Shown: positions 30,123 to 52,924 of the stretch, one piece after another | Numbering within the stretch: position 1 is the stretch's first letter | How the letters are laid out: the number at the start of each line of letters is the position of its first letter | NCBI GenBank assembly: GCA_037379345.1 | Contig: CM074512.1 | Span: forward strand, 32,488,001 to 32,552,000 | Origin: Perna viridis | Taxonomy: Eukaryota | Length of the DNA: 64,000 nucleotides | Reading direction: 5' to 3' | The notes under the pieces: generated by a model | Databases searched by the model: none | What the model saw: only the letters and a program-made list of their open reading frames with translations | What the model was told of the DNA's origin: nothing | Program-made: the position numbers and the translations under genes

Positions 30123-31460
30123 TTAAATTGGCTGTTTCTTCAAATCTTCTTGAGAGTCGGAAATTTTCACACCTAAAATGGGAGACCTAATGTGTCGGAT
30201 TATTGTCAAAACTACTTTCACGAGGAACAACAGGCTCCCAACAGTCAACAGAACAAGAGTGATGATTGTATTTCTATTATCAATGTTGTAGTTTTCGCTC
30301 AAACTTCCAATAAGGGCAACAATAATCACAAGATATGGAGTGAGTGTATAACGAGTGAATTTGTCCCAGAAGAAGAAGTCTAATGTAACGAAGACAACAA
30401 TTTGGGCTGCAATAATCGACAATGCTACCGTGCCGCCATTTTGGACTGAAATATCGATAGTTGATCTGTACACCAAAACCATGTTCAGATTCAAATTTGT
30501 GGCAATGGTGCACCAAGTAGCATAAACAGAAATTCCATTCTGTACAAGAATTCTTGTCAGCCAAATATCCCATTTCCGATCCGATTTTTGAAGAGTGTGC
30601 AAATTGTTATTCAATGCTCTGTAAGTCAGGAACAAGCATGCGTAGAGAGTAATATACATCATCAGCAAGACAGCAAAACAGGCTTCGAGATGCTCCCTAT
30701 CAAATAGAAAAATCCAACACAGATTTAACGCCATGTTGACAATAAAATTAACGAAAAATGGAGCGCATAATAATTCCGGGTCGTTGAACGCATAACCAGA
30801 TTCCGTCTTTCTGAAGATATTGGCAATTGTATAGATAAGCCACAGCGTTTCCCACACGTAGATCACGCCCCAAATGCTAAATGTCCACCCGGCTGGTGTT
30901 ATATCCAAGTAATATTTGTCCGAAATATTTCCAGTGCTGCTTTTGAAAATTCCTGATTCTGGAAATAAAAATGTACATATTTTAAGGAATTACTTTTTAC
31001 ACATTAACATGTGAATATGCTTAAAGTTAACGATAATTTTGTCCAATAACCAAGATATTATCATAATAAAACTAGATATGGAAATCAACAAGCCTTTTTA
31101 TATAAATAACTGGGTACAAGGTTTTATTCTTTAAACATTTCAATTACTTGATACATTTTTGTAACTGAAGAACAACACATCTTCATGTCGGCTTCTGTTT
31201 TTGTGCCTGCTCAAGGGGGTGCTTTAGAAGTTTCAGTAAATCATAAAATTGTTCATCTATAGCATGCCTGACTGATTTATTAAACAGCTGTAGAAATTAA
31301 TGGACTTGGAATTAAATCAGATAGTATATTTCAAGAAAGAACTGACTGTAGTAAACCCACCTCTACCAACAGAACTTCCAGACAAAGCATTAAATGATGT
31401 CGCCACTGCATACATGAGGCACGCGCCTATCACGAGCCCGACGTACGTACAACGGTCCAT
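30123..31460 (-). CDS. Multi-pass membrane protein, TspO/tryptophan-rich sensory protein-like, 311 aa, 2 coding exons
   Basis: Exon 31460-31361 (MDRCTYVG..SVGR G|gtgggt) and exon 30958-30123 (tttccag|AA), 936 nt in frame. Motifs ISDKYYLDITPAGWTFSIWGVIY, LNLCWIFLF and NGISVYATWCTIATNLN; about 8 hydrophobic segments. Probable non-coding exon 1 ends at 32141. Confidence 0.85.
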
Positions 31461-36899: not shown

Positions 36900-39800
36900 A
36901 AGTCTTATAAACAAGATGGTTTGTTTTTGAAATGGAATATTTCTATGTCGAAGTTAACTGTCTTATTGACACAGGTTCCACTACATTTATTTTGCACCCC
37001 AGAAAATATTGTGATTCCAAATGACATGAAGCCGGAATTGAAGAGGCATAATTCAAGATTATGCTTACCTGATGGAGGGTACATAAAGACTATGGGTTAT
37101 GTAAATTTACCGATACGTGTAAATAATTTGGTCATAAATCCACAATTTATGACAGCAAACATTGATGTTCCTGCTGTTATAGGATATGACTTTCTGAATA
37201 AACATAAATGTACACTTGATATGGGTAGAGGTGTACTTTCTTTGAGTCAAAACCAGGTGCAATGTACCAAAGAGAGTCAAATTGACTCCATTTTTCAAAA
37301 TTGTTTTAGGGGGAAAAGTTACAGTTCGGCCGAACTCGGAGATTTTCACGCAAGGCAAAGTTGTGGCCTATGTTAATGCAATAGTTGAGTCGGTCCACAC
37401 CAAAAACGTAGAGAGAGTCCTGATTGCTAAGGCTTTGGTTGATCCTTCCTGTGGCCAAATTCCATTGAGGTTAGCGAATATTACTGGGGCCACGTGTGAG
37501 CTCGCTGAGTCTGATTTACATCCTCATGAAGCAACAGATCGCACATTAATGAAAGTTATTGAAAGTACAGACGATGATTTTCCTGCACATCTAAAATCCT
37601 TAAGACAAACGAGCAGTAAATTACTGTCTGATTAACAGATGACGGGATATGCCAAACCATTTAAGCAAGCCCCAAGACTTATACTTATAATTAAAAGAGA
37701 GGCGGTCGACAAGGAGATCCAAAGGCTACTAGACTGTAACATCATAGAACCGTCGAAAAGTCCTTGGGCATCCAATATTGTTCCTGTAACAAAAAAAAGA
37801 TGGTTCAATACGCATATGCTTTGATATGATAGCCCTGAATAACTTTACCATAAAAGATTCATATCCACTTCCACGTATAGACGATTCACTTGATGCTTTG
37901 AGAGGGTCCAAATGATTTAGTGTACTTGACCTTTCGAGTGGATATTTCCAGACACAGACGGACGAACATGATAAAGAAAAGACTGCCTTTACCAGTACAA
38001 AGGGTCTGTTTCAGTTCAAAGTTATGGCAATGGAATTGTGCAGCGGAGTTTCCACATTCCAAAGGTTAATGGAGTATGTCCTGGTCGAACTCAATTGGCA
38101 AACATGCATAATATATATTGATGACATTGTCATTTTTTCAGACTCATTTGAATCCCATTGTTCAAGACTCAGTAAGGTTCTAGAGAGGATTTCAATGGGA
38201 GGCTTGAAAGTTTCACCAAAGAAATATTTTTTATTTCAAGAACAAGTGTCTTTTCTAGGGCACATAGTATCATCGCTTGGAATTTCTGCTGATCCACTGA
38301 AAATAGAATGTATAAAGTCGTGGCCCAGTCCTACCACAGTTAAAGAAGTAAGATCCTTTCTGGAAACATGCTCCTATTACAGGAGGTTTATCCAAACTTT
38401 TGCAGTAATAGCCAAGCCAATGCATAGATTAACAGAGAAAACTACCCTTTCGATTGGACCACTGAATGGGAGTCTGCATTTACAGTCCTCAAAGAAGCGT
38501 TGGGAACATCTCCAATCCTGGGGTACCCAGATATGTCAAAACCCTTTTTGCTCGACACGGATGCGAGTGGATATGGGGTGGGAAGTGTCCTGTCCCAATT
38601 TTCTGGTGACAAAGTTGTAATAGCTTGTTACAGCAAAACCCTTAGTAAAGCGTAACGCCAATATTGCTTACTAGAAGGGAGCTGTTGACAATCATTTTAA
38701 GCATTAAACAGTTCCACCGTTATCTATATGGTGCAAAATTCCTAGTACGTAGTGACCATAGTGCACTCTCATGGATTTTACGGTTCAAAAAAAACCCGGA
38801 AGGTCAAATGGCCAGATGGTTAGAGTTTGTGAATATATACAATATGCTGGTACAACATCGACCAGGAAAGATACATGGGAATTGTGATGACCTCTCAGGC
38901 CGCCCTGTGTTGACTGTAACCACTGTGATAAGCAAGATCAGAAAGAGATTGACGAGGAAGATGCACCTGACTTCTGTCGAAGAACGAAGAAGACAAAGGA
39001 ATCCATTGAAGACGAAGAAGGGCCATAACTTTGGTTAAGCGGTAAAACAGATGAGCAACTGGCCAAAGCTAAAAAAAAACGAGACCCAGTTCTTTCACTA
39101 TTCCATGAAGTGAAGACGAAGCTGATTGGGAAACCTAGTTGGTCTGATATCTCAATTGAGAATACAAATTTTAAAAAGTACCAGTCCCAGTGGGATCGGT
39201 TAGTGCTAAGAAATGATGTGCTGTACCGAAATTGGATTCATTCTACTACGGAAGGGACGATTCTACAATTATTGATTCCGTATCCATGGAAACAAGATGT
39301 ACTTGAAGTGATGACGAACAATGTGGACATCTAGGTATACATAAGACGACTGCAAGAGTCCAAAACCAGTTCTACTGGGTTGGAAACAAGCGGGACGTCA
39401 TTGCCCACATTCAAAACTGCATAATATGTGGTTCACGAACACAGCCTCCGAGACGAGCTAAAAGTAAGATGAAACAATATCATGTTGGGGCCCGCTAAAG
39501 AGAATTGGTCTGGATTTGATTGGGCCTAAGATGCGGTCCCATAAAGGTAATAGATACACGTTGATTATCTCGGACTATTTTACCAAATGGGCTGAAGTCT
39601 ATCAATTACCAGACACGGAAGCGCAAACAGTTGCTGACAGTTTTGCCACAAATTTTATTTGTCGTTTCTGTGTCTCTCGACAGGTTCATGCTGATCAGGG
39701 TAGACAATTTGAGTCCAAACTTTTCAATTCTGAATTAATAAGACGAGGACGACTTATAGGCCACAAAGCAATGGTCTTGTAGAACGGCTTAATAGGTCCT

Positions 39801-40405
39801 AGAGGACATAGTAAGTAAATATGTAAATAAAAACCAAAAGGATTGGGATTAGCACCTACCATGGGCATTAATGGCCTATCGCTCATTTGAGAATGAGACG
39901 ACTAAATTATCCCCCTGCATGTTAATGCTTGGCAGGGAAATTGAAATCCCTTGATTCAGTGCATGGTCCTCATCCCCAGAAAGACGATTGTCCCACTAAA
40001 ACAGAAGCGGTCTCTTCTTATGCCAAGAAAACTCAAGAGCTGTTATGGAACGTACAACAGAAAGCACGCAAAAATCTGGCCAATGCCAGTGATAAGCAAA
40101 TGCGATCCTATGACGTAAAGGCTCAACAGAATTCGTACAAGACCGGAGATCCTGTTTGGTTGTACTCATATACTAGAACCAAACAGATAAGCCCGAAGCT
40201 CAAATGTCCATGGGAGTGTCCTTTCATTGTAACTGAAGTCATTTCAGATGTGATATATAAGATTAAAAAATGTCCTAATTCCAGAATCCAAATTGTACAT
40301 CATGACAGACTGAAACCATTCTATGGGAGAGTAGACAATTGGTACAAAACTCAGTCTTTGACAGTTCAAAGCTCACAGAGCATAGTTGGCCCGTCATCAC
40401 AGTAA
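36900..40405 (+). pseudogene. pol: Gypsy pol pseudogene (PR-RT-RH-IN)
   Basis: CLIDTGS (protease), SPWASNIVPV, DSYPLPRIDD, YIDD (RT), LDTDAS and TRRELL..RSDHSAL (RNase H), ISDYFTKW..HADQGRQFES (integrase), IVHHDRLKPF. Many frameshifts and stops. Confidence 0.92.
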
Positions 40406-41573: not shown

Positions 41574-41815
41574 CAATATACACTGTTTCTTAAAAGACAT
41601 TTGTAAATACTGAACAATCATGTAACATGGTGGGAGGGTAGATATTTATTATGTAATAGAACAAAGTATTTCTTGTCCGGGACGGACAATATTTTCAAAG
41701 CAGGGGGCGGATTAAAAAAAACGTAAAGTTGTCATCACTCATGTTTATGAAATGTGTTGAATTATTTATATATGCCATTTGTAGGGCAGCCTGGGCAAGT
41801 TTATATTGTGTATAC

Positions 41816-42684
41816 TGTCGCAGGTCAAAATACAAGGGCCGGGACATCGGCAAAATATTTGTATTATGGCTGCATAAAAAGTCGTCCTGGTAATTTAACT
41901 TTATTCGTCTGAAAATAAACATATACATGTTTGCCAAATACAGCGTAACCTGAAAATAATGCACAAGATCTACACATTCCATAAATGTGTATTTACGGAG
42001 TATCGATGCACAAAAACTATCATTTGCCGATATTGAATGATAAACTAACATGAAATGAATGAACTATACGAATTTTAACTTTGCATAAATTTGTGAAAAT
42101 GAATTACGGAAATTGAAATGAAATATTATTAAACTAAAGAATAATGATTATTGTCAAATTGAAACTATATGAATTCCAAATAGCTAAAACGTTTATCCAA
42201 TTTACTTACTATCAATCTTATTAAACTTTATCTCATTGAATAATAAAGTTTCCAAATAAAATATTTTAGAAATGAAATAAATTTCTTAATCAATAAATAT
42301 TCGTACCTGAACGGCGACTTGCGTCCTCCGTCGACTATTGTGGAGTGAGCAAATTTTCAATTGTTATTGATTTTATAATATTTTGTTAGTAAGACATGCA
42401 GTGCCCGTGGCGCGGGAATGTCGATACTGTATAAAGTCAAAATATAGTTCATGTCGTATTGATTAAATGTACGTCATGATGATTACAAATACATGTACGT
42501 CATGATGAATATGAATGAATGACGAATGATATGATGAGTGATTGATAACATATAAACAAAACATCCCCCTTCTAGATTATAAACAACTAATAATCTATCA
42601 AATTCAAGTACGGATCATATATGCATACGATCTACATAATAACTATATCAAATACATCCCCCCTTTACAATCTATACGGTGACA
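41816..42684 (-). repeat. 3' LTR (869 bp)
   Basis: Direct repeat of 49888-50756, no differences seen by eye. Termini TGTC..GACA; AATAAA on the minus strand at 41900-41905. Confidence 0.97.
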
Positions 42685-42696
42685 TACACCCCCTCC
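42685..42696 (-). promoter_or_regulatory. Polypurine tract
   Basis: GGAGGGGGTGTA immediately 5' of the 3' LTR on the minus strand. Confidence 0.85.
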
Positions 42697-42958
42697 ATAA
42701 GAAAAATGGGATTCGTCCCCGAAACCAATGACAAAACAATAAACCTATAATACATTCGAAAATGCATAGTCAAATATTCAAAATGAAATTTGGCCATTCC
42801 CAAGTCAAACATGTGGCAAGCGCCTCTATGCGATTACAAATGTCCAAAATTCATATGAAAACAAGTATTTATTTATACACATGTAAAATATTGCAAACAA
42901 TACAATTTATCAAAATATCAGACAGATTTACATCATGTTTGTGAACCCATTTTGTTTC

Positions 42959-43633
42959 TCAATTATTCAACTTGGACTCATTACATCCAAATACAGAATT
43001 CAAACGTCGAATCCATACATCACGTAATTCGATTCCCGGATGTACACCATCAATCAATTTCGAATAAACGTATCGAATTCTGCCTTTATTATATTTATGA
43101 ACTGGTGTGTGCAAAAACGGTGTGACAAATCCGTTGCCGGTGTTATATTCTGTAATATAACTATTTATTTTGTTTAAGATTTCGTTCAGCATCTCTTGCA
43201 TATTATTATAATGCGTATCCAATAGAAGATAAGAAGTTTTTCCTTGTTGAAGTCTTATATTGTTCCATACCACGAAACTCATAGTAGTAATAGTTGCCAT
43301 TACTATTTTGCAATCTATGGAACTTAACTTCTCTTCTATCATACGGATATTAGTTTTAAAAATCTGCATATGATTGATCTTTTCTCCTTTTGAATCTCTG
43401 ATCTCTAAGCAAGATTCTTGATAACGGTTTGCTCTGCGAACGGAGCATATGTCCGGTATACCCGCTATAAAATAAACGATTTTGTTACCATCTATATCTT
43501 TTAAATCATCGTACGCTTTGTCACATAATTGTCTCAAGTTTGCACCCGGTTTTACGTATAAATGTTGGCAAAACAATTTGCCTTCCAGTGTTCTTCCTCT
43601 ACTGGAGGTGTATGTATAGGTCCGCGGGTTCAT
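42959..43633 (-). CDS. ORF3 of Gypsy element: SGNH/GDSL hydrolase (esterase)-like protein, 224 aa
   Basis: Block I TSSRG (Ser11), block II PGA (Gly30), block III VYFIAGIPD (58-61), block V LIDGVHP (Asp195/His198), in canonical SGNH order and spacing. Intact ORF between the pol stop and the PPT, preceded by splice acceptor tttcttttag|attgaaATG. Confidence 0.8.
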   Translation of the reverse strand: MNPRTYTYTSSRGRTLEGKLFCQHLYVKPGANLRQLCDKAYDDLKDIDGNKIVYFIAGIPDICSVRRANRYQESCLEIRDSKGEKINHMQIFKTNIRMIEEKLSSIDCKIVMATITTMSFVVWNNIRLQQGKTSYLLLDTHYNNMQEMLNEILNKINSYITEYNTGNGFVTPFLHTPVHKYNKGRIRYVYSKLIDGVHPGIELRDVWIRRLNSVFGCNESKLNN

Positions 43634-43732
43634 TTCAATCTAAAAGAAATGAATATATATTCTATATGGAAATTTCCGTTAATATAAACAAAATCGCAAA
43701 ATGAAATATATATAATTAATGAATTAATAAAA

Positions 43733-46700
43733 CTATGTAATATAATCTCTAAATCTGATAGGTGGTCTGACTTGTCTAGTAGACCTACGAACTGGGATTT
43801 CTGGTGTAACATCCGGTTCACTAACATTTGGTTCAACGACGGACTCGCTACTTTCTCGTACATCGGAAATCGAATTCTCTAATGTCGCACTCGATCGGGT
43901 ATCAGTTAAACTCAACAGTTTATTATAACTGCTCGAACTTGAATCGGACGAATAATTGTCACGCCTAACGATTACTTGTGGATCAAACGGAACTGCCAAT
44001 GGATTCAAAGGACTAACCTGTTTCTGTGATCCGTCATGTCTTACAAAAACGAGTTCATCCTCGGAATTAGACTCCGGTTCATACTCCACATCGTCAATAC
44101 CAACTGAATAATCATTCTCATTCGATTCTGTAACGTCGACACAAACTTCCGTCTCCTTTCTTTCTGGGCGGTTCCGACTCGTTTCCCCAGAATCCAGAAA
44201 TTGGACAGATGTAATCGGTAATAACATATTTCTATGTACCGTTTTTCGGATTCGTCCGTGTTCTTGTCGGATCACATAAACTGGAATTTCAGAATCGGGT
44301 CGAGACATTACGATGTAAGGTTCTTTACCCCATTTATTTGCCAATTTATGTTTTCCTTTGAATGCTACATTCTTCAATAATACTCGATCACCCGGTTCAA
44401 GTGTTGATTGACGTACCTTGAGATCGTATCGAGATTTATGACGTCTATTAACCCTTTCTGCTGTTTTCGCTGCCGTTTTATATGCGAACTGCAATCTTTT
44501 CTTCAAACCATAGACATACGAATTTCGATCGGCTGTCGAAGAAGAGTTGACGTCACTACCTAAAAATGCATCAATAGCAAGACGTGGATGCCAACCAAAC
44601 ATTAGAAAATGCGGACTATAACCAGTACTTTCATGCTTAGTAGCATTATAAGCATGTACTAGCGGTGCTACATAACTCTTCCAATTCGCCTTTTTATCAT
44701 CTTCGAGAGTGCCTAGCATATTTAACAGAGTTTGATTAAATCGTTCGCATTGGCCATTACCTTGTGGGTGGTAAGGGGTGGTGCGCGATTTCTTAACGTC
44801 TGCCAAATTGCATAGCTCTCTGATAACTTTCGACTCAAAGTTTCGACCTTGGTCGCTATGTATACGAGATGGAAACGAATAATGTTGAATGAAATGTTCC
44901 CATAAACTTTTGGCTGTAGTTTTAGCTGACTGATTCCTTGTTGGAATTGCCTGAGCATACCTTGTGAAATGATCAGTTATGACTAATATATTTTCATAAC
45001 CCCCTTTGGATCGTTCCAGTGTTAGATAATCTATACATAGAATCTCCAAAGGCTGAGACGAAGATATATTAATCAATTCTGCGGATTTCGTTGATCTGGT
45101 TTTTCTTAGAATGCATTTTGCACATGACGACACCTTACGTTCAACGTCTTTATCTACACCTGGCCAATAATACCTGGATTTTACCAACGACAAAGTCCTA
45201 TCTCGGCCCTGATGACCAACATCGTCGTGAAGACCTACAAGAGCGATCTCACGGTAGATATCGGGCAACACTAGCTGAGAAACTGACTCGTTGTTGATAA
45301 AACTCTTTCTATATAAAACCTCCTGTTGCATATATAATTTATCCCATTCTCTTATATATTTCTTGACGTCATCGCTTTCCTTCGAGATCTGCCGTTTCGT
45401 CGGTTTATGTCCAGTACTAATTAATTCGATAATTCTACTGATTGCAATGTCACATTTCTGTTCTTTGGACCAGTCAATATCGGATAAATTTGACTGATAA
45501 TCCATATTGTCGACAATTTCTGCATCTTGTGATAACAGTAAACTTTCTACTATTGGTTGTTCTGACTGAGCAATAGTTGCTGAACTACATACTGCCTTAA
45601 TGACGTCACAGTCTATGTGGTTTAGATTAGTATGATTTCTGGACAAAATATCGGCATCAATATTCGATTTACCGGTTCGATAGCTCAGATTGAAATCATA
45701 GTTTGACAATGCGGCCACCCACCTATGTCCTGTAGCATCAAGCTTAGCTTTATCTAAGACGTAGGTTAATGGGTTATTGTCAGTTCTGACCTCAAACTTA
45801 CTACCTGACAGATAATCATGAAATTTGTCGGTTACTGCCCATTTAAGTGCCAAAAATTCCCTCTTGTGGGCCGGATATAACCGTTCTGGACCACGTAAAC
45901 TACGACTAGCGTATGCAATGACCCTCTCTTTACCTTCTCTTCTCTGATACAATATAGCACCAAGACCAGTTCCAGATGCGTCTATATTAAGAATAAAAGG
46001 CAACGAGAAGTCTGCAAAAGCAAGAACAGGTGGATTTATAAGCTTGCTAATGATTGCATCCATCGCATTTTGCTCATTGGTACCCCACTGCCAGGGAGTT
46101 GGCTTTGCTCTCTTCTTAGGCTTAGCCTTTTTTTTGTTAGTGTGGTGACCAATTAACAAATCATTTAATGGCTTTGCAATCTTAGCATAGTCCTTGATAA
46201 ACTTTCTGTAGTATGATGTAAAACCAAGAAATTTTCTAAGATCTTTGACACCACTTACTTTAGGCCAGTTTTTTACGGCGGATACTTTATCGGGATCGGT
46301 CTTAATACCGTCGGCAGATACAATAACCCCAAGGTACTTAATCTCACTCTTGAAAAACTCACATTTATCGCCGCGAAGTTTTAAACCATTCTCTTCAAGA
46401 CGCTTAAACACAGATTCCAAACGTTCGAAATGTTGTTCGATCGTACTCGAGAACACGACTATATCATCTAGAAAAACTAGACATTGTCTTAAATGAGCCT
46501 CGCCCATGCATCGTTCCATTAACCTTTGAAACGTCGCACCGGAATTTGTCAATCCAAAAGGGAGACGATTCCACTCGTAAAATCCCAAAGGGCCTAAATT
46601 GAAAGCGGTCATAAATTTATCAGATTCCTTGATTCCACAATTCCAATACGCCGAACGGAGATCTAGGCGGGAAAAGAACTTAGAACCCGACAGACAATCA

Positions 46701-47956
46701 ATCGTCTCGTCTATCCGCGGTAGAGCGTACGCGTCTTTCACGGTACGTTTGTTTAATTTTCTAAAATCGATACAAAAACGAAGACTACCGTCTTTCTTTC
46801 GTACAAGTACAACGTTACTCGAGAACGGACTATTCGATTCGCGAATACAACCCGCTTCTAGCATTTCCCGAACATGTTCGCGAACTTCATCAAACAACGC
46901 CGGTGGTATACGTCTATACGGCTCTTTAAATGGTTTATCGTCGGTCAATTTAATTTCGTGTTCTAACAGTTTTGTATACCCTATATCAGAAGAACCTTTG
47001 GAAAATACTGACTTCCATTTTCCAAGCAAACCTCGCAATCTATCCTTTACCTCATAATCTAAACTATCAGATATTTTAATACCAAGTTCCTCTAAAGGCA
47101 TATCTTTCGTAACATTTTTCTCATTCGAATCTAAGTCTATGTGACGCATGACCTTGACCTCGTTCAGACTACATATAGTTGTTTTAGGTTTAATGGCAAC
47201 TGTTCTCGCTGTCATATTAAATATTCTGACTGGAACTCTACAAGTTTTACCCTTCAGATTAACAACTCTGGGGCAAACTGCTAAAGAATCAGAGTTATCG
47301 CCCTCTAAATTCTCTGTTACAACAGTTGTATCACATGAAACCTTGGATTTAGCTAATCCATTAATCGTCATGACTGACATGGGTTTTAGCCTTAAGGGCT
47401 TTCTGTTTGTAGATTTAACTTTACCTACAATTGATTCGGTCAGAGTACTAAATGCTAAATTCCATTCTTTCGGAATACCTTGAGTATTATCCTCAGACAT
47501 ACACATATGGAAAAGCTTGATTATATTTGTCCCTACTACAATGGGAACATTCTGATTGTATTCAGTCGGAGAAACAACTAATAGAGGTACATAAACCTCA
47601 TCTTGTGACATAAAACTGACCTTAACTTTGGCCTCGATATAACCTTGGTATGGCAAAACAGCGCCACCTGCTACATTGACAGTTAGACATAATTCACTCA
47701 GATCCCGTAATTCAGGTACTGGTTTCAATTTATTCAACATTGAGCTTGAAATTGTTGAAATCATTGAACCACTATCGATCAATGCCCTACATTTAACATT
47801 ATTGACAATGATATTTGCCTCATTAGCTTTTCCAACCATTCTATCTAACAGACTTTGTTGATCTTTATCATAACTTTCTTTAGGACTAAAGGTTTCTGAA
47901 ACCTTTTGTGTAAAGTCACGTGTTCGTCCTTCAACCGAGACCTTTATCCGTTTAAA
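43733..47956 (-). CDS. pol: Gypsy Pol polyprotein (protease, RT, RNase H, integrase), probably expressed by -1 frameshift from gag
   Basis: 1368-aa ORF from Met at 47839; the frame stays open upstream to the slippery site at 47956. LIDSGS, LRFCIDFRKLN, LPFGL, FLDD, NIDAS, RTDNNPL, HDDVGH..CAKC, ITDHFTRY, HSDQGRNFE, GNGQCERFN, KLANKWGKEPY. Confidence 0.97.
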   Translation of the reverse strand, partial: FKRIKVSVEGRTRDFTQKVSETFSPKESYDKDQQSLLDRMVGKANEANIIVNNVKCRALIDSGSMISTISSSMLNKLKPVPELRDLSELCLTVNVAGGAVLPYQGYIEAKVKVSFMSQDEVYVPLLVVSPTEYNQNVPIVVGTNIIKLFHMCMSEDNTQGIPKEWNLAFSTLTESIVGKVKSTNRKPLRLKPMSVMTINGLAKSKVSCDTTVVTENLEGDNSDSLAVCPRVVNLKGKTCRVPVRIFNMTARTVAIKPKTTICSLNEVKVMRHIDLDSNEKNVTKDMPLEELGIKISDSLDYEVKDRLRGLLGKWKSVFSKGSSDIGYTKLLEHEIKLTDDKPFKEPYRRIPPALFDEVREHVREMLEAGCIRESNSPFSSNVVLVRKKDGSLRFCIDFRKLNKRTVKDAYALPRIDETIDCLSGSKFFSRLDLRSAYWNCGIKESDKFMTAFNLGPLGFYEWNRLPFGLTNSGATFQRLMERCMGEAHLRQCLVFLDDIVVFSSTIEQHFERLESVFKRLEENGLKLRGDKCEFFKSEIKYLGVIVSADGIKTDPDKVSAVKNWPKVSGVKDLRKFLGFTSYYRKFIKDYAKIAKPLNDLLIGHHTNKKKAKPKKRAKPTPWQWGTNEQNAMDAIISKLINPPVLAFADFSLPFILNIDASGTGLGAILYQRREGKERVIAYASRSLRGPERLYPAHKREFLALKWAVTDKFHDYLSGSKFEVRTDNNPLTYVLDKAKLDATGHRWVAALSNYDFNLSYRTGKSNIDADILSRNHTNLNHIDCDVIKAVCSSATIAQSEQPIVESLLLSQDAEIVDNMDYQSNLSDIDWSKEQKCDIAISRIIELISTGHKPTKRQISKESDDVKKYIREWDKLYMQQEVLYRKSFINNESVSQLVLPDIYREIALVGLHDDVGHQGRDRTLSLVKSRYYWPGVDKDVERKVSSCAKCILRKTRSTKSAELINISSSQPLEILCIDYLTLERSKGGYENILVITDHFTRYAQAIPTRNQSAKTTAKSLWEHFIQHYSFPSRIHSDQGRNFESKVIRELCNLADVKKSRTTPYHPQGNGQCERFNQTLLNMLGTLEDDKKANWKSYVAPLVHAYNATKHESTGYSPHFLMFGWHPRLAIDAFLGSDVNSSSTADRNSYVYGLKKRLQFAYKTAAKTAERVNRRHKSRYDLKVRQSTLEPGDRVLLKNVAFKGKHKLANKWGKEPYIVMSRPDSEIPVYVIRQEHGRIRKTVHRNMLLPITSVQFLDSGETSRNRPERKETEVCVDVTESNENDYSVGIDDVEYEPESNSEDELVFVRHDGSQKQVSPLNPLAVPFDPQVIVRRDNYSSDSSSSSYNKLLSLTDTRSSATLENSISDVRESSESVVEPNVSEPDVTPEIPVRRSTRQVRPPIRFRDYIT

Positions 47957-49104
47957 TTATCGGATTTATTCTGACCTTGGTTGTTGTAACTATTATTATA
48001 GTTTCCTCTACCTCCGAAACTACCTCTCTGACCTCTATTCGTACCTCTACTATTATAACCTCTATAACTTCTATAACCTTGTCCTGACCCTTTTCCATTT
48101 TGATTTTGTTTTTCATTTCTATTCGACTCTTTCAACTTTTTAAGTTCATCTTCAATAGATTCTATTTTCTTGTTCAGAGATTTCAACGATTTCGATACTT
48201 CATCTAGTTTATCTGATTGAGTAATCGAAGCTTGTTGTTGTATCTTTTTCTCAGTACTTTTAGACCTTTGATAATTAGATAAGTCAAGTTCTATTGATCT
48301 TATTTCTTTTCTTAACTGATCAAAATCCATTACAGTATCATACTTATATCTACTAGCATTTTTCAATGATGGATCTCTCAAACCAGACCAAAATTTTGAC
48401 CGAAGCATCTCATTCTTAGCTGCAGGATTTATTTGACCCTTTTCAACAGCCAATTGTATCAAACCCTCTAATTGCATACCATATTCAGCAACTGATTGAT
48501 TTGGTTGTTGATTTTCACTATAAAATCTCTGCAGTAATGCTTCACTACTAAACACATTCCCATAGACCCCTTCAAGTTTATCTATAATCTGGGACGGTGT
48601 AGCGTCATCGGACAATGAAAGTAGCAAACTTCTTGCTTTCCCCTTCAAAGACCCACGTATACTCTGTCGCAAAATAATATCGCTATAATTCCCTTCTCTA
48701 ATAATACATCTGACTTCGTATTTCCATACGTCAAAATTCACTTCGCTTTTCTCTTCCCCAGAAAATATTGGTATTCTAGGTTTAGCTTGAGACACACCAG
48801 GATTATCATGTGCCATTGTGGCATGAAAATCATGAATAGGGGGTGGGGTATGTGTAGGCGTTTGCCTGCTCCTTACTGCTGGGGTACTAGTTACAAATGC
48901 AGAAGGAATATGTTTCATTCTATCGAACTCTTCAGATGTAACAACTTTGTAATCTGAATGTCGATTAATAATATCGATCATAAGAGCTATTTTCTCTTCA
49001 CTAATACTTTCAATACTACTCTTTTGCTCTTCCTTGTGTGTCTCTTTGCCACCCGATGCCATAATAACTAATAGAGTTACTAAACTCAAATATAAATTCA
49101 ACAT
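47944..49104 (-). CDS. gag: Gypsy Gag (PNMA/Ma-like capsid), RG/N-rich tail, no CCHC knuckle
   Basis: PRIPIFSGEEKSEVNFDVWKYEV, IRGSLKGKA, FYSENQQPNQSVAEYGMQLE, LRSKFWSGL. The real start may be Met at 49062 (MASGG). Confidence 0.93.
   Translation of the reverse strand: MLNLYLSLVTLLVIMASGGKETHKEEQKSSIESISEEKIALMIDIINRHSDYKVVTSEEFDRMKHIPSAFVTSTPAVRSRQTPTHTPPPIHDFHATMAHDNPGVSQAKPRIPIFSGEEKSEVNFDVWKYEVRCIIREGNYSDIILRQSIRGSLKGKARSLLLSLSDDATPSQIIDKLEGVYGNVFSSEALLQRFYSENQQPNQSVAEYGMQLEGLIQLAVEKGQINPAAKNEMLRSKFWSGLRDPSLKNASRYKYDTVMDFDQLRKEIRSIELDLSNYQRSKSTEKKIQQQASITQSDKLDEVSKSLKSLNKKIESIEDELKKLKESNRNEKQNQNGKGSGQGYRSYRGYNSRGTNRGQRGSFGGRGNYNNSYNNQGQNKSDNLNG
47950..47956 (-). promoter_or_regulatory. 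-1 programmed ribosomal frameshift slippery heptamer U UUA AAC
   Basis: gag frame GAT AAT TTA AAC GGA TAA. The -1 frame has TAA immediately before the heptamer, then reads TTT AAA CGG ATA... open into pol. Confidence 0.85.
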
Positions 49105-49726
49105 GCAAAATGATCAATGAAAATGAAATGAACAATGATGATACTTACCAATAATCAGTCAATGTCAGTCGAAACTGTCGCGGCAGACATGCTTGAGAGT
49201 GATTACATCTACAGTGCTCAGTGTGCGGATTAATTCATAAATCTGATAAATATAATTAAAATATCAATATTCATAAAACATCAATACATAAACACATGTA
49301 CACAATATAAATGAATAAAATTGTAAATATTTATGTTTCGGCAAAATGTCCTCAGTTGACCTGTCGCTGGCGTCTATACATCATATCATGTAACGCAAAT
49401 TGCTTATCGGCAAATTAAAAGGAACTGCACATCGTTCGACTCCTATTACGGTATCGGACTGACTCCAGTTGCATACTGTTTGTAATTTCTTTCAATGTTA
49501 CGAAATTATGTTTTGTTGAAATAAAGTCTGCGCAAATACATAAATGGTTTGTAATTATGTTGACTTTCCCACAATTAATCTAATTTTAATACTTTAACCA
49601 TGTCTTCTCATAATTATACGGACGGCTAATTTGCTGGAATTCTTGTATGGATCCCAACCATTTTACCAATACCGTTTGTCGTGGTTCCGGAACATATGTG
49701 GTTAAAGTTGAAATTTGGTAATTTTA

Positions 49727-49856
49727 AGTTGTACCAATAAAGTTGTACCATTAAAGTAGTACCATTAATAAAGTTGTACCATTAAAGTAGTACCATTAAT
49801 AAAGTTGTACCATTATAAAGTAGTACCATTAATAAAGTTGTACCATTATTACCATG
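49727..49856. repeat. Tandem array of 14-17-bp units in the Gypsy 5' leader
   Basis: About 8 copies of aaagt(t/a)gtaccatt(aat) directly downstream of the PBS on the element strand. Confidence 0.9.
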
Positions 49857-49867
49857 GACTATAGCTT

Positions 49868-49885
49868 ATCTCGGTGGAACCTCCA
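49868..49885 (-). promoter_or_regulatory. Primer binding site complementary to tRNA-Gln 3' end
   Basis: Plus strand ATCTCGGTGGAACCTCCA equals the 3' 18 nt of metazoan tRNA-Gln (..AATCTCGGTGGAACCT+CCA), 2 nt from the 5' LTR. Confidence 0.9.
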
Positions 49886-49887
49886 TT

Positions 49888-50756
49888 TGTCGCAGGTCAA
49901 AATACAAGGGCCGGGACATCGGCAAAATATTTGTATTATGGCTGCATAAAAAGTCGTCCTGGTAATTTAACTTTATTCGTCTGAAAATAAACATATACAT
50001 GTTTGCCAAATACAGCGTAACCTGAAAATAATGCACAAGATCTACACATTCCATAAATGTGTATTTACGGAGTATCGATGCACAAAAACTATCATTTGCC
50101 GATATTGAATGATAAACTAACATGAAATGAATGAACTATACGAATTTTAACTTTGCATAAATTTGTGAAAATGAATTACGGAAATTGAAATGAAATATTA
50201 TTAAACTAAAGAATAATGATTATTGTCAAATTGAAACTATATGAATTCCAAATAGCTAAAACGTTTATCCAATTTACTTACTATCAATCTTATTAAACTT
50301 TATCTCATTGAATAATAAAGTTTCCAAATAAAATATTTTAGAAATGAAATAAATTTCTTAATCAATAAATATTCGTACCTGAACGGCGACTTGCGTCCTC
50401 CGTCGACTATTGTGGAGTGAGCAAATTTTCAATTGTTATTGATTTTATAATATTTTGTTAGTAAGACATGCAGTGCCCGTGGCGCGGGAATGTCGATACT
50501 GTATAAAGTCAAAATATAGTTCATGTCGTATTGATTAAATGTACGTCATGATGATTACAAATACATGTACGTCATGATGAATATGAATGAATGACGAATG
50601 ATATGATGAGTGATTGATAACATATAAACAAAACATCCCCCTTCTAGATTATAAACAACTAATAATCTATCAAATTCAAGTACGGATCATATATGCATAC
50701 GATCTACATAATAACTATATCAAATACATCCCCCCTTTACAATCTATACGGTGACA
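49888..50756 (-). repeat. 5' LTR (869 bp)
   Basis: Identical by eye to 41816-42684; adjacent to the PBS. Confidence 0.97.
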
Positions 50757-50899
50757 ATACAAAAATGGTGGTGATCCATTGAGATGTGTTTTTCATGGAA
50801 AGTCAAAATGGTCTAATATAGGGTAAAATTTGATTCTGTTTACTGTGTATAATGGTAACTAGTTAGCACGTATCATCAATATTGTATTGTTAATTATGT

Positions 50900-52643: not shown

Positions 52644-52924
52644 GTTATTCCATGAACGTCTATGTGTCATGTAAAAGCGCTTAGTTTCTGGGCACCTAAG
52701 TATAGTTCCACGCGTTATTCCATAGACGTCTATGCGTCATGTAAAAGCGCTTAGTTTCTGGGCACCTAAGTATAGTTCCACGCGTTATTCCATAGACGTC
52801 TATGCGTCATGTAAAAGCGCTTAGTTTCTGGGCACCTAAGTATAGTTCCACGCGTTATTCCATAGCCGTCTATGCGTCATGTAAAAGCGCTTAGTTTCTG
52901 GGCATCTAGCTATTATAGCTCCAC
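52644..52924. repeat. 70-bp minisatellite, 4 copies
   Basis: Unit gttattccatagacgtctatgcgtcatgtaaaagcgcttagtttctgggcacctaagtatagttccacgc starts at 52644, 52714, 52784 and 52854. Confidence 0.95.

Follow-up and report, generated by a model that had tools for sequence, protein, structure and literature searches.

The window, by which we mean the whole 64,000-nucleotide stretch of Perna viridis DNA analysed here (GenBank assembly GCA_037379345.1, contig CM074512.1, positions 32,488,001 to 32,552,000 of the forward strand), contains an 8,941-bp long terminal repeat (LTR) retrotransposon at positions 41816-50756. Its gag and pol genes and a third open reading frame (ORF3) all lie on the minus strand, and ORF3, which runs from ATG to stop through 224 codons and lies downstream of the pol stop (43733) and upstream of the polypurine tract (42696-42689), is the subject of this report. 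We consider it likely that ORF3 serves this young and intact Ty3/Gypsy element as a genuine accessory gene, encoding an esterase of the SGNH fold, and that this gene moves between retroelements as a module, is expressed from a spliced mRNA and acts on lipids or at membranes. The features of the element, listed from its 5′ to its 3′ end, are these:

50757-50760, no strand: target-site duplication ATAC, copy beside the 5′ LTR
49888-50756, minus strand: 5′ LTR, 869 bp, TG..CA, 100% identical to the 3′ LTR
49868-49885, minus strand: candidate primer-binding site, beginning TGG, 2 nt past the 5′ LTR (sequence reading)
49736-49848, minus strand: 31-nt tandem repeat, 3.6 copies, in the 5′ leader just past the candidate primer-binding site (Tandem Repeats Finder)
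49143-49149, minus strand: putative splice-donor-like signal G/GTAAGT in the leader, with the first gag ATG 44 nt further on
47944-49104, minus strand: gag, 386 aa (Pfam), with a second in-frame ATG at 49062
43733-47839, minus strand: pol, 1,368 aa, encoding protease, reverse transcriptase, RNase H and integrase; frame open from 47956
43640-43655, minus strand: putative splice-acceptor-like signal, a pyrimidine tract with AG, whose end is 6 nt upstream of the ORF3 ATG
42959-43633, minus strand: ORF3, 224-aa stand-alone SGNH-fold esterase-like protein (S11, G30, G58/D61, D195, H198)
42689-42696, minus strand: polypurine tract GGAGGGGG, 4 nt from the 3′ LTR (sequence reading)
41816-42684, minus strand: 3′ LTR, 869 bp, TG..CA, 100% identical to 49888-50756
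41812-41815, no strand: target-site duplication ATAC, copy beside the 3′ LTR, the same four bases as at 50757-50760

Both the ends and the coding content of the element are those of Ty3/Gypsy. Direct LTRs of the form TG..CA are bounded by a short target-site duplication, and gag is joined by a pol whose Pfam domains follow the Gypsy order of protease (PR, residues 9-90), reverse transcriptase (RT, 346-507), RNase H (585-714) and integrase (IN, 866-1075). The gag protein matched PNMA (E 4.6e-12) and Retrotrans_gag (0.0017), while pol matched RVT_1 (4.4e-35), RT_RNaseH (8e-30), Integrase_H2C2 (2.4e-15) and rve (1e-14). The pol frame is -1 relative to gag, and its open stretch overlaps the end of gag by 13 nt. 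All genes of this copy are unbroken, and the same element is present in five independent public assemblies (L015-L019) at 99.7-99.8% nucleotide identity and without indels, with a single conservative residue change in ORF3 that falls outside its motifs. The identical LTRs and these near-identical copies therefore indicate that the insertion is young and that the family is probably multi-copy. No tRNA genes for comparison with the candidate primer-binding site were found in the window or in the large related loci, and an Rfam scan of 36-54 kb gave no match.

The 1,049 bp that separate the LTR from pol hold a stop-free run of 226 codons, which exceeds the longest run in every one of 500 shuffles (mean 70, maximum 167), and ORF3 is therefore not a chance product of AT-rich DNA. 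The encoded protein is basic (26 kDa, pI 9.2). Because its N-terminus is hydrophilic and no 19-residue window reaches the Kyte-Doolittle cut-off of 1.6 (the maximum is 1.32), it has neither a membrane helix nor a signal peptide. Lacking both a signal peptide and a membrane anchor, and with a fold that is SGNH rather than that of a fusion protein, ORF3 was rejected as an env gene. An earlier annotation made from the letters of this DNA (the sequence-only reading) had described an intact Gypsy element with just such a 224-aa ORF3 on the gag-pol strand, situated between the pol stop and the polypurine tract, bearing TSSRG, PGA, AGIPD and DGVHP motifs and devoid of the signal peptide or transmembrane helix of an envelope protein. 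Each of these statements is borne out: the LTRs are identical, the ATAC duplication is in place, gag and pol are unbroken, ORF3 lies at 42959-43633, and the motifs occupy T9-S10-S11-R12-G13, P29-G30-A31, A57-G58-I59-P60-D61 and D195-G196-V197-H198-P199.

The relatives of ORF3 connect it to the SGNH hydrolases. At E ≤ 1e-3 an exhaustive HMMER search gave 432 representative clusters, of which 151 also pass E ≤ 1e-10; stand-alone proteins of 210-300 aa predominate. We aligned 80 near-full-length relatives with a mean identity of 25% (alignment A2). Pfam recognized Lipase_GDSL in 12 of these 80 at E ≤ 0.01, as well as Lipase_GDSL_2, AlgX-SGNH and OSK in one relative each. The Gypsy-linked relative P0014, which is 44% identical to the window ORF3, scored 29.0 bits against Lipase_GDSL, for which the curated cut-off is 23.6. 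When the A2 profile was searched against PDB sequences it matched designed proteins based on GDSL-like lipase scaffolds (3e-5) and lipases of this kind themselves (3p94, E 0.005), and in these alignments the G-I-P-D of the family lies opposite the lipase G-x-N-D and its D-G-V-H-P opposite lipase block V. A scan with a profile from an 11-sequence alignment gave one short locus in metagenomes and none among viral contigs.

The predicted structure points to the same fold. The AlphaFold2 model of ORF3 made with A2 has a mean predicted local distance difference test (pLDDT) score of 98.0 and a predicted template modelling score (pTM) of 0.92, and it is a three-layer alpha/beta/alpha arrangement around a central parallel sheet, as expected of an SGNH protein. 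A Foldseek search with this model against the PDB returned 70 matches at E ≤ 1e-3, and those listed are nearly all GDSL/SGNH enzymes. They include the Bacteroides acylhydrolases 4iyj (E 1.3e-7, template modelling (TM) score 0.59-0.64) and 4ppy (E ~1e-7, TM ~0.6), and also 3p94, 4hf7, sialate O-acetylesterase 6njc, PatB 7tjb and the brain platelet-activating factor (PAF) acetylhydrolase 3dt6; against predicted viral structures the matches were phage esterases only. Within the model, S11 sits at the junction of strand 1 (2-9) and helix 1 (11-16), G30 follows strand 2 (22-27), G58-D61 follow strand 3, and D195 and H198 lie in the loop before the C-terminal helix, a placement of the motifs that is canonical for SGNH proteins. 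Relative to the minimal fold the family would carry two insertions of its own, a hairpin at 63-76 and a long helix at 139-166.

Conservation within A2 falls on the same residues. The nucleophile S11 and the following R12 are each kept in 75 of 75 relatives, so that the nucleophile motif of the family reads (S/T/D)-S-R-G and not G-D-S. Block II retains G30 in 76/80, block III retains G58 in 79/80 and D61 in 72/80, and block V is nearly invariant (D195 in 79/80, G196 and H198 in 80/80). At the block-III Asn position (60), 51 of the 80 relatives have Pro, 21 Cys, 4 Thr and just 2 Asn. Thus ORF3 possesses the nucleophile Ser, the block II Gly and the D-x-x-H of block V that mark SGNH hydrolases, and lacks the block III oxyanion Asn. 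The Ser11-Asp195-His198 triad accordingly looks intact in the alignment, whereas the oxyanion hole appears altered, with Pro or Cys in place of Asn and an invariant Arg after the nucleophile. Further invariant positions are peculiar to the family, namely Y71 and E73 in the hairpin, Y142, Q146, N157 and N164 in the long helix, and N124 and T171-P172. Between diverged elements the synonymous sites of ORF3 are saturated (proportion of synonymous differences, pS, 0.70-0.89), with nonsynonymous differences (pN) at 0.30-0.41. This saturation makes a dN/dS ratio for ORF3 inestimable, and the near-identical copies, which carry one ORF3 substitution, have no power for it; pN is far below the saturated pS, which indicates that ORF3 has been under long-term purifying selection.

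ORF3 is not confined to the window copy. In a set of related elements that we call lineage A, one locus (L001) has a pol 73% and an ORF3 54% identical to those of the window, a second (L003) has an intact gag-pol-ORF3 arrangement with corresponding identities of 59% and 39%, and a third (L002) is a decayed Mytilus edulis copy in which pol is in pieces in several frames and the ORF3 homologue is truncated and interrupted once. A second lineage, B, was found in Mytilus trossulus (L009, 8138-19943, and L010), where LTRs enclose gag, a chromodomain pol, a 794-aa ORF and then an SGNH ORF. The lineage B pol is only ~30% identical to that of the window, and its SGNH ORF is 44% identical to the window ORF3. 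The 794-aa ORF would be env-like, judged from its hydrophobic N-terminus, a strong membrane segment near its C-terminus, 8 sequons, 16 Cys and a PDB sequence match to a 'fusion protein' (E 4.7e-7). Since the SGNH ORF of lineage B lies downstream of this env-like gene, it is an extra accessory gene rather than a substitute for env, and the SGNH gene is the 3′-most accessory gene of Gypsy elements with or without env. In Mytilus coruscus the SGNH ORF is fused, in two gene models, to the tail of an integrase or a chromodomain.

These results settle most of what the sequence-only reading had anticipated. Its stand-alone SGNH-fold gene, with a triad that looks intact and with the Asn replaced, agrees with the model, with the Pfam matches of relatives and with the conserved columns; the SGNH fold it expected from AlphaFold and Foldseek was obtained (pLDDT 98, 70 PDB matches at E ≤ 1e-3); and the consistent position 3′ of the integrase that it wanted tested was found in L001, L002, L003, L015-L019 and L009/L010. 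Its description of ORF3 as occupying the env position is right as to location after pol, and wrong if taken to mean that env has been replaced, given the env-like gene that lineage B has too.

A separate feature of lineage A concerns pol. In relatives of the L003 type the C-terminal tail of pol resembles Pfam PAM2, a motif that interacts with poly(A)-binding protein (L004:1-957 and L005:1-732; E 4e-4 to 6e-4, about the curated threshold), unlike the window pol, which has no PAM2 match.

More distant SGNH homologues (29-37% identical) were identified 3′ of the APE-RT ORF of long interspersed nuclear elements (LINEs) in four independent places (L011, L012, L013 and L020/L021). For example, the unit at L020 (320-6559) consists of an ORF1, an APE-RT ORF2 and then the SGNH ORF. 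Homology between two LINE copies extends to a (TCTAA)n tail ~1.1 kb past the SGNH ORF, which is therefore internal to the LINE. ORF3 belongs to an SGNH clade that, among the members whose context was examined, mostly adjoins retroelements.

In neighbour-joining trees the Gypsy-linked ORF3 genes form one clade (13 of 85 tips), which was free of LINE-linked genes in 57 of 60 bootstraps, and the five LINE-linked members are all placed in another group, of 60 tips. The genes of lineages A and B were not separated (27/60). Within lineage A, ORF3 evolves faster than pol (dN 0.39-0.57 versus 0.18-0.34), though between lineages A and B it is the less diverged of the two (0.51-0.58 versus 0.78-0.86), a pattern expected from exchange after the lineages split. 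We infer, from few taxa and by simple methods, that the SGNH gene was exchanged between Gypsy lineages after their split and that it is a module which retroelements acquire from one another. A transfer from LINE to Gypsy is weakly favoured by the greater diversity of the LINE-linked genes.

Retroviral env and accessory genes are expressed from spliced subgenomic mRNAs, and signals suggestive of the same strategy accompany the SGNH gene. In the M. trossulus RefSeq model for P0014 the first 44-45 codons of gag are joined to the SGNH ORF, using the donor GAG/GTAAAT and an acceptor formed by a long pyrimidine tract that ends in TAG and abuts the SGNH ORF ATG. In a second M. trossulus RefSeq isoform this first exon is instead spliced to the env-like ORF, so that one donor in early gag serves both. 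An acceptor-like signal was seen by eye 0-6 nt from the ATG in all five Gypsy-linked loci, and a strict rule (acceptor within 6 nt of the ATG) is satisfied by 4 of the 5, as compared to 0.8% of the ATGs in the window. The only GGTAAGT on the sense strand of the window element is the one in the leader, 44 nt before gag; L003 has GGTGAGT 22 nt before gag. Thus ORF3 is probably translated from a subgenomic mRNA in which the leader donor is spliced to the acceptor 6 nt before its ATG. As in retroviruses and env-bearing Gypsy elements, the donor would lie near the start of gag and the acceptor directly before the downstream ORF, with the difference that splicing of the window element is predicted from sequence signals.

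Kapitonov and Jurka reportedly described, in 2003, an esterase in the ORF1 protein (ORF1p) of CR1, L2 and RTEX non-LTR retrotransposons. Building on the gene, fold, residue conservation, linkage and purifying selection that the present data support, a mechanism may be proposed that would cover catalysis, substrate, splicing and benefit to the element. Splicing of the transcript from the leader donor to the acceptor near the ORF3 ATG would yield a subgenomic mRNA from which ORF3 is translated. The product would be a cytosolic SGNH hydrolase with a Ser11-Asp195-His198 triad and an altered oxyanion hole, and its activity would most likely be acyl-ester hydrolysis on an intracellular lipid or another acylated substrate. 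By analogy with what has been proposed for the CR1/L2 ORF1p esterase, such hydrolysis might aid the assembly or trafficking of particles or ribonucleoproteins at membranes. An active esterase with an atypical oxyanion hole is the most likely identity of ORF3. We put forward more tentatively, as somewhat short of probable, a wider proposal: that bivalve retroelements have in common a mobile SGNH cassette with a rebuilt oxyanion hole, marked by an invariant Ser-Arg-Gly and the loss of the block-III Asn; that this cassette has moved between a LINE lineage, where as a 3′ ORF it would be without precedent, and no fewer than two distant Gypsy lineages, where it is expressed by retrovirus-like alternative splicing and once stands beside an env-like gene; and that it provides retrotransposition with a recurrent, selected enzymatic function.

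Several observations weigh against the esterase interpretation and the retroelement setting that goes with it. When ORF3 alone was compared with Pfam at E ≤ 1 no family was identified, and ORF3 alone had no meaningful match among PDB sequences either, the only hits of these comparisons being chance coiled coils; its SGNH membership comes from its relatives and the predicted structure. In several homologue searches the named source organisms of the relatives were Mytilus only. The canonical block-III oxyanion Asn is missing in 78 of the 80 relatives, so altered or reduced catalysis is possible. The splice model is drawn from sequence signals and from an automated gene model in a relative. Finally, the M. 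edulis homologue P0022 (L006) has no RT within 10 kb, and a single 2,135-aa ORF (L007:10001-16408) comprises five tandem SGNH-like domains with a weak Lipase_GDSL_2 match, so that some members of the family may be host genes.

As to the surroundings of these last two homologues, P0022 lies in L006 (1-20738), next to a long array of a 37-bp satellite and to a ~6.9-kb duplicated unit whose ORFs have TNP-like transposase domains. The 2,135-aa ORF is in a 1.39-Mb contig of a metagenome assembly and may be a cellular relative of the family.

The alternative that survives best is that ORF3 keeps the SGNH fold as a non-enzymatic module that binds or scaffolds RNA, membrane or Gag, in the manner of the OSK domain of Oskar, which has been described as a non-catalytic SGNH protein (Schneider et al. 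2013, PMC3905857). We regard this as rather unlikely. The missing block-III Asn, the basic character of the protein and the single relative among 80 with a weak OSK match (E 0.008) all agree with it, but the Ser, Asp and His and the block-II Gly are near-invariant at ~25% identity, as expected for catalysis, whereas OSK-type domains have lost such residues. ORF3 was for this reason not identified as an OSK domain.

Less probable still is a partnership with an envelope, in which the protein would destroy receptors or deacetylate glycans much as viral haemagglutinin-esterases do, and the window element would have lost its env. The SGNH ORF directly 3′ of the env-like ORF in the M. trossulus lineage would suit such a partnership, as would the sialate O-acetylesterases among the fold matches. 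However, a protein with no signal peptide or anchor should remain in the cytosol, the env-less lineage A keeps an intact ORF3 down to 59% pol identity, and the family is also carried by LINEs, where env is absent. Kinship with haemagglutinin-esterases was itself rejected, as no eukaryotic viral enzyme of this type is among the listed PDB fold matches and the search of viral structures gave phage esterases only.

That ORF3 is a mere passenger, a host SGNH gene picked up once and of no use to the element, we hold to be very improbable and as one-off capture largely refuted: the L006 homologue away from any RT and the multi-domain homologue of L007 hint that cellular relatives may exist, but the intact gene occupies the same position in elements whose pol genes are 73%, 59% and ~30% identical to that of the window, its pN is far below the saturated pS, its catalytic columns are conserved, an acceptor-like signal stands at its ATG, and all five other assemblies keep it with one conservative amino-acid difference, so that capture of a host gene in this copy alone, the outcome that the sequence-only reading had named as damaging to its proposal, is not what is seen.

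Among known systems, the closest counterpart of the element, which we take to encode an esterase-like accessory protein, is found in bdelloid rotifers, whose LTR retrotransposons (Vesta) include GDSL esterase/lipase ORF3s (Rodriguez, Kenefick and Arkhipova 2017, Viruses 9:78, PMC5408684). In the rotifer proteins all invariant S-G-N-H residues are intact, and membrane and coiled-coil segments are absent; Athena elements, which are Penelope-like, have related ORFs, and the authors suggested an auxiliary, possibly membrane-related role (PMC5408684). The gag-pol-GDSL ORF3 architecture, which the sequence-only reading thought might be undescribed, is therefore not new, and the window element is a further and somewhat unusual example of it. 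Both systems are retrovirus-like LTR elements with a stand-alone GDSL/SGNH ORF3 that lies 3′ of pol and is free of membrane and coiled-coil segments, in each, related ORFs are found in a further class of retroelement, and for each an auxiliary role connected with membranes is proposed, the likeness being drawn from the published description. They differ in host (rotifer versus mussel). They also differ in the SGNH residues, intact there whereas the block-III Asn is replaced in 78 of 80 relatives here; in the partner class, which is Penelope-like Athena there and LINE here; and in the env-like gene that coexists in one of the present lineages and the splice signals that are present. Our searches of the full text of open-access papers and of bioRxiv preprints, in which absence is not proof, turned up neither a mollusc LTR element described with such an ORF nor a published esterase ORF 3′ of a LINE RT.

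The LINE esterases on record to date (CR1, L2 and RTEX) are domains of ORF1p whose active site is canonical, and one of them, ZfL2-1 (PDB 4c1b; PMC3905857), provides a second comparison. It is an ORF1p domain upstream of the RT, joined to a coiled coil and equipped with a canonical Asn195/Gly165 oxyanion hole. Like ORF3 it is a retroelement-encoded SGNH fold with a conserved Ser-Asp-His triad and no secretion signal, and a membrane or lipid role has been proposed for it; the window protein differs in standing alone, at the 3′ end, and in lacking the block-III Asn. Furthermore, 4c1b was recovered neither by the A2 profile at E ≤ 10 nor among the best 50 of the 70 fold matches, and there is therefore no specific kinship with the ZfL2-1 ORF1p. 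On all three counts (a stand-alone 3′ protein, the missing Asn and the failure to recover 4c1b) an ORF1p esterase of the ZfL2-1 type was rejected. In structure ORF3 comes nearest to bacterial GDSL-like acylhydrolases and enzymes of the PAF-acetylhydrolase type, which are its best structural matches (4iyj, 4ppy, 3p94, 4hf7 and 3dt6; E 1e-7 to 3e-4, TM ~0.6) and the sole PDB matches of the sequence profile, with blocks III and V in alignment. From these enzymes it differs in an identity of 10-14%, in the insertions of its family and in the S-R-G nucleophile motif.

Esterase genes were already on record from rotifer LTR elements, Penelope-like elements and LINE ORF1 proteins, to which mussel Gypsy elements and the 3′ ORFs of LINEs are now added, a recurrence which argues for a general step of retroelement replication that is served by acyl-ester hydrolysis. 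The finding also suggests that accessory genes are exchanged as modules between classes of mollusc retroelements, as proposed for rotifers. The protein of the present family is compact, stands alone, has an atypical active site and is modelled with confidence, and the family offers natural comparisons between elements that have the gene with and without env, and between Gypsy elements and LINEs.

Other features of the window lie outside the element. A second Gypsy-like pol, which belongs to another family and is decayed, being split into several short ORFs, was found on the plus strand at 36921-40405, 1.4 kb from the intact element. Its RT is 44% identical to that of the intact element, it includes an Integrase_p58_C match, and no SGNH homologue adjoins it. 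A 261-aa ORF on the minus strand (30123-30908) has a sub-threshold match to TspO/MBR (22.3 bits versus a cut-off of 24) and may be a host exon or a chance reading frame. On the other side, ~1.9 kb outside the element, a 70-bp tandem repeat extends over 52644-52908 in 3.8 copies with 97% matches.

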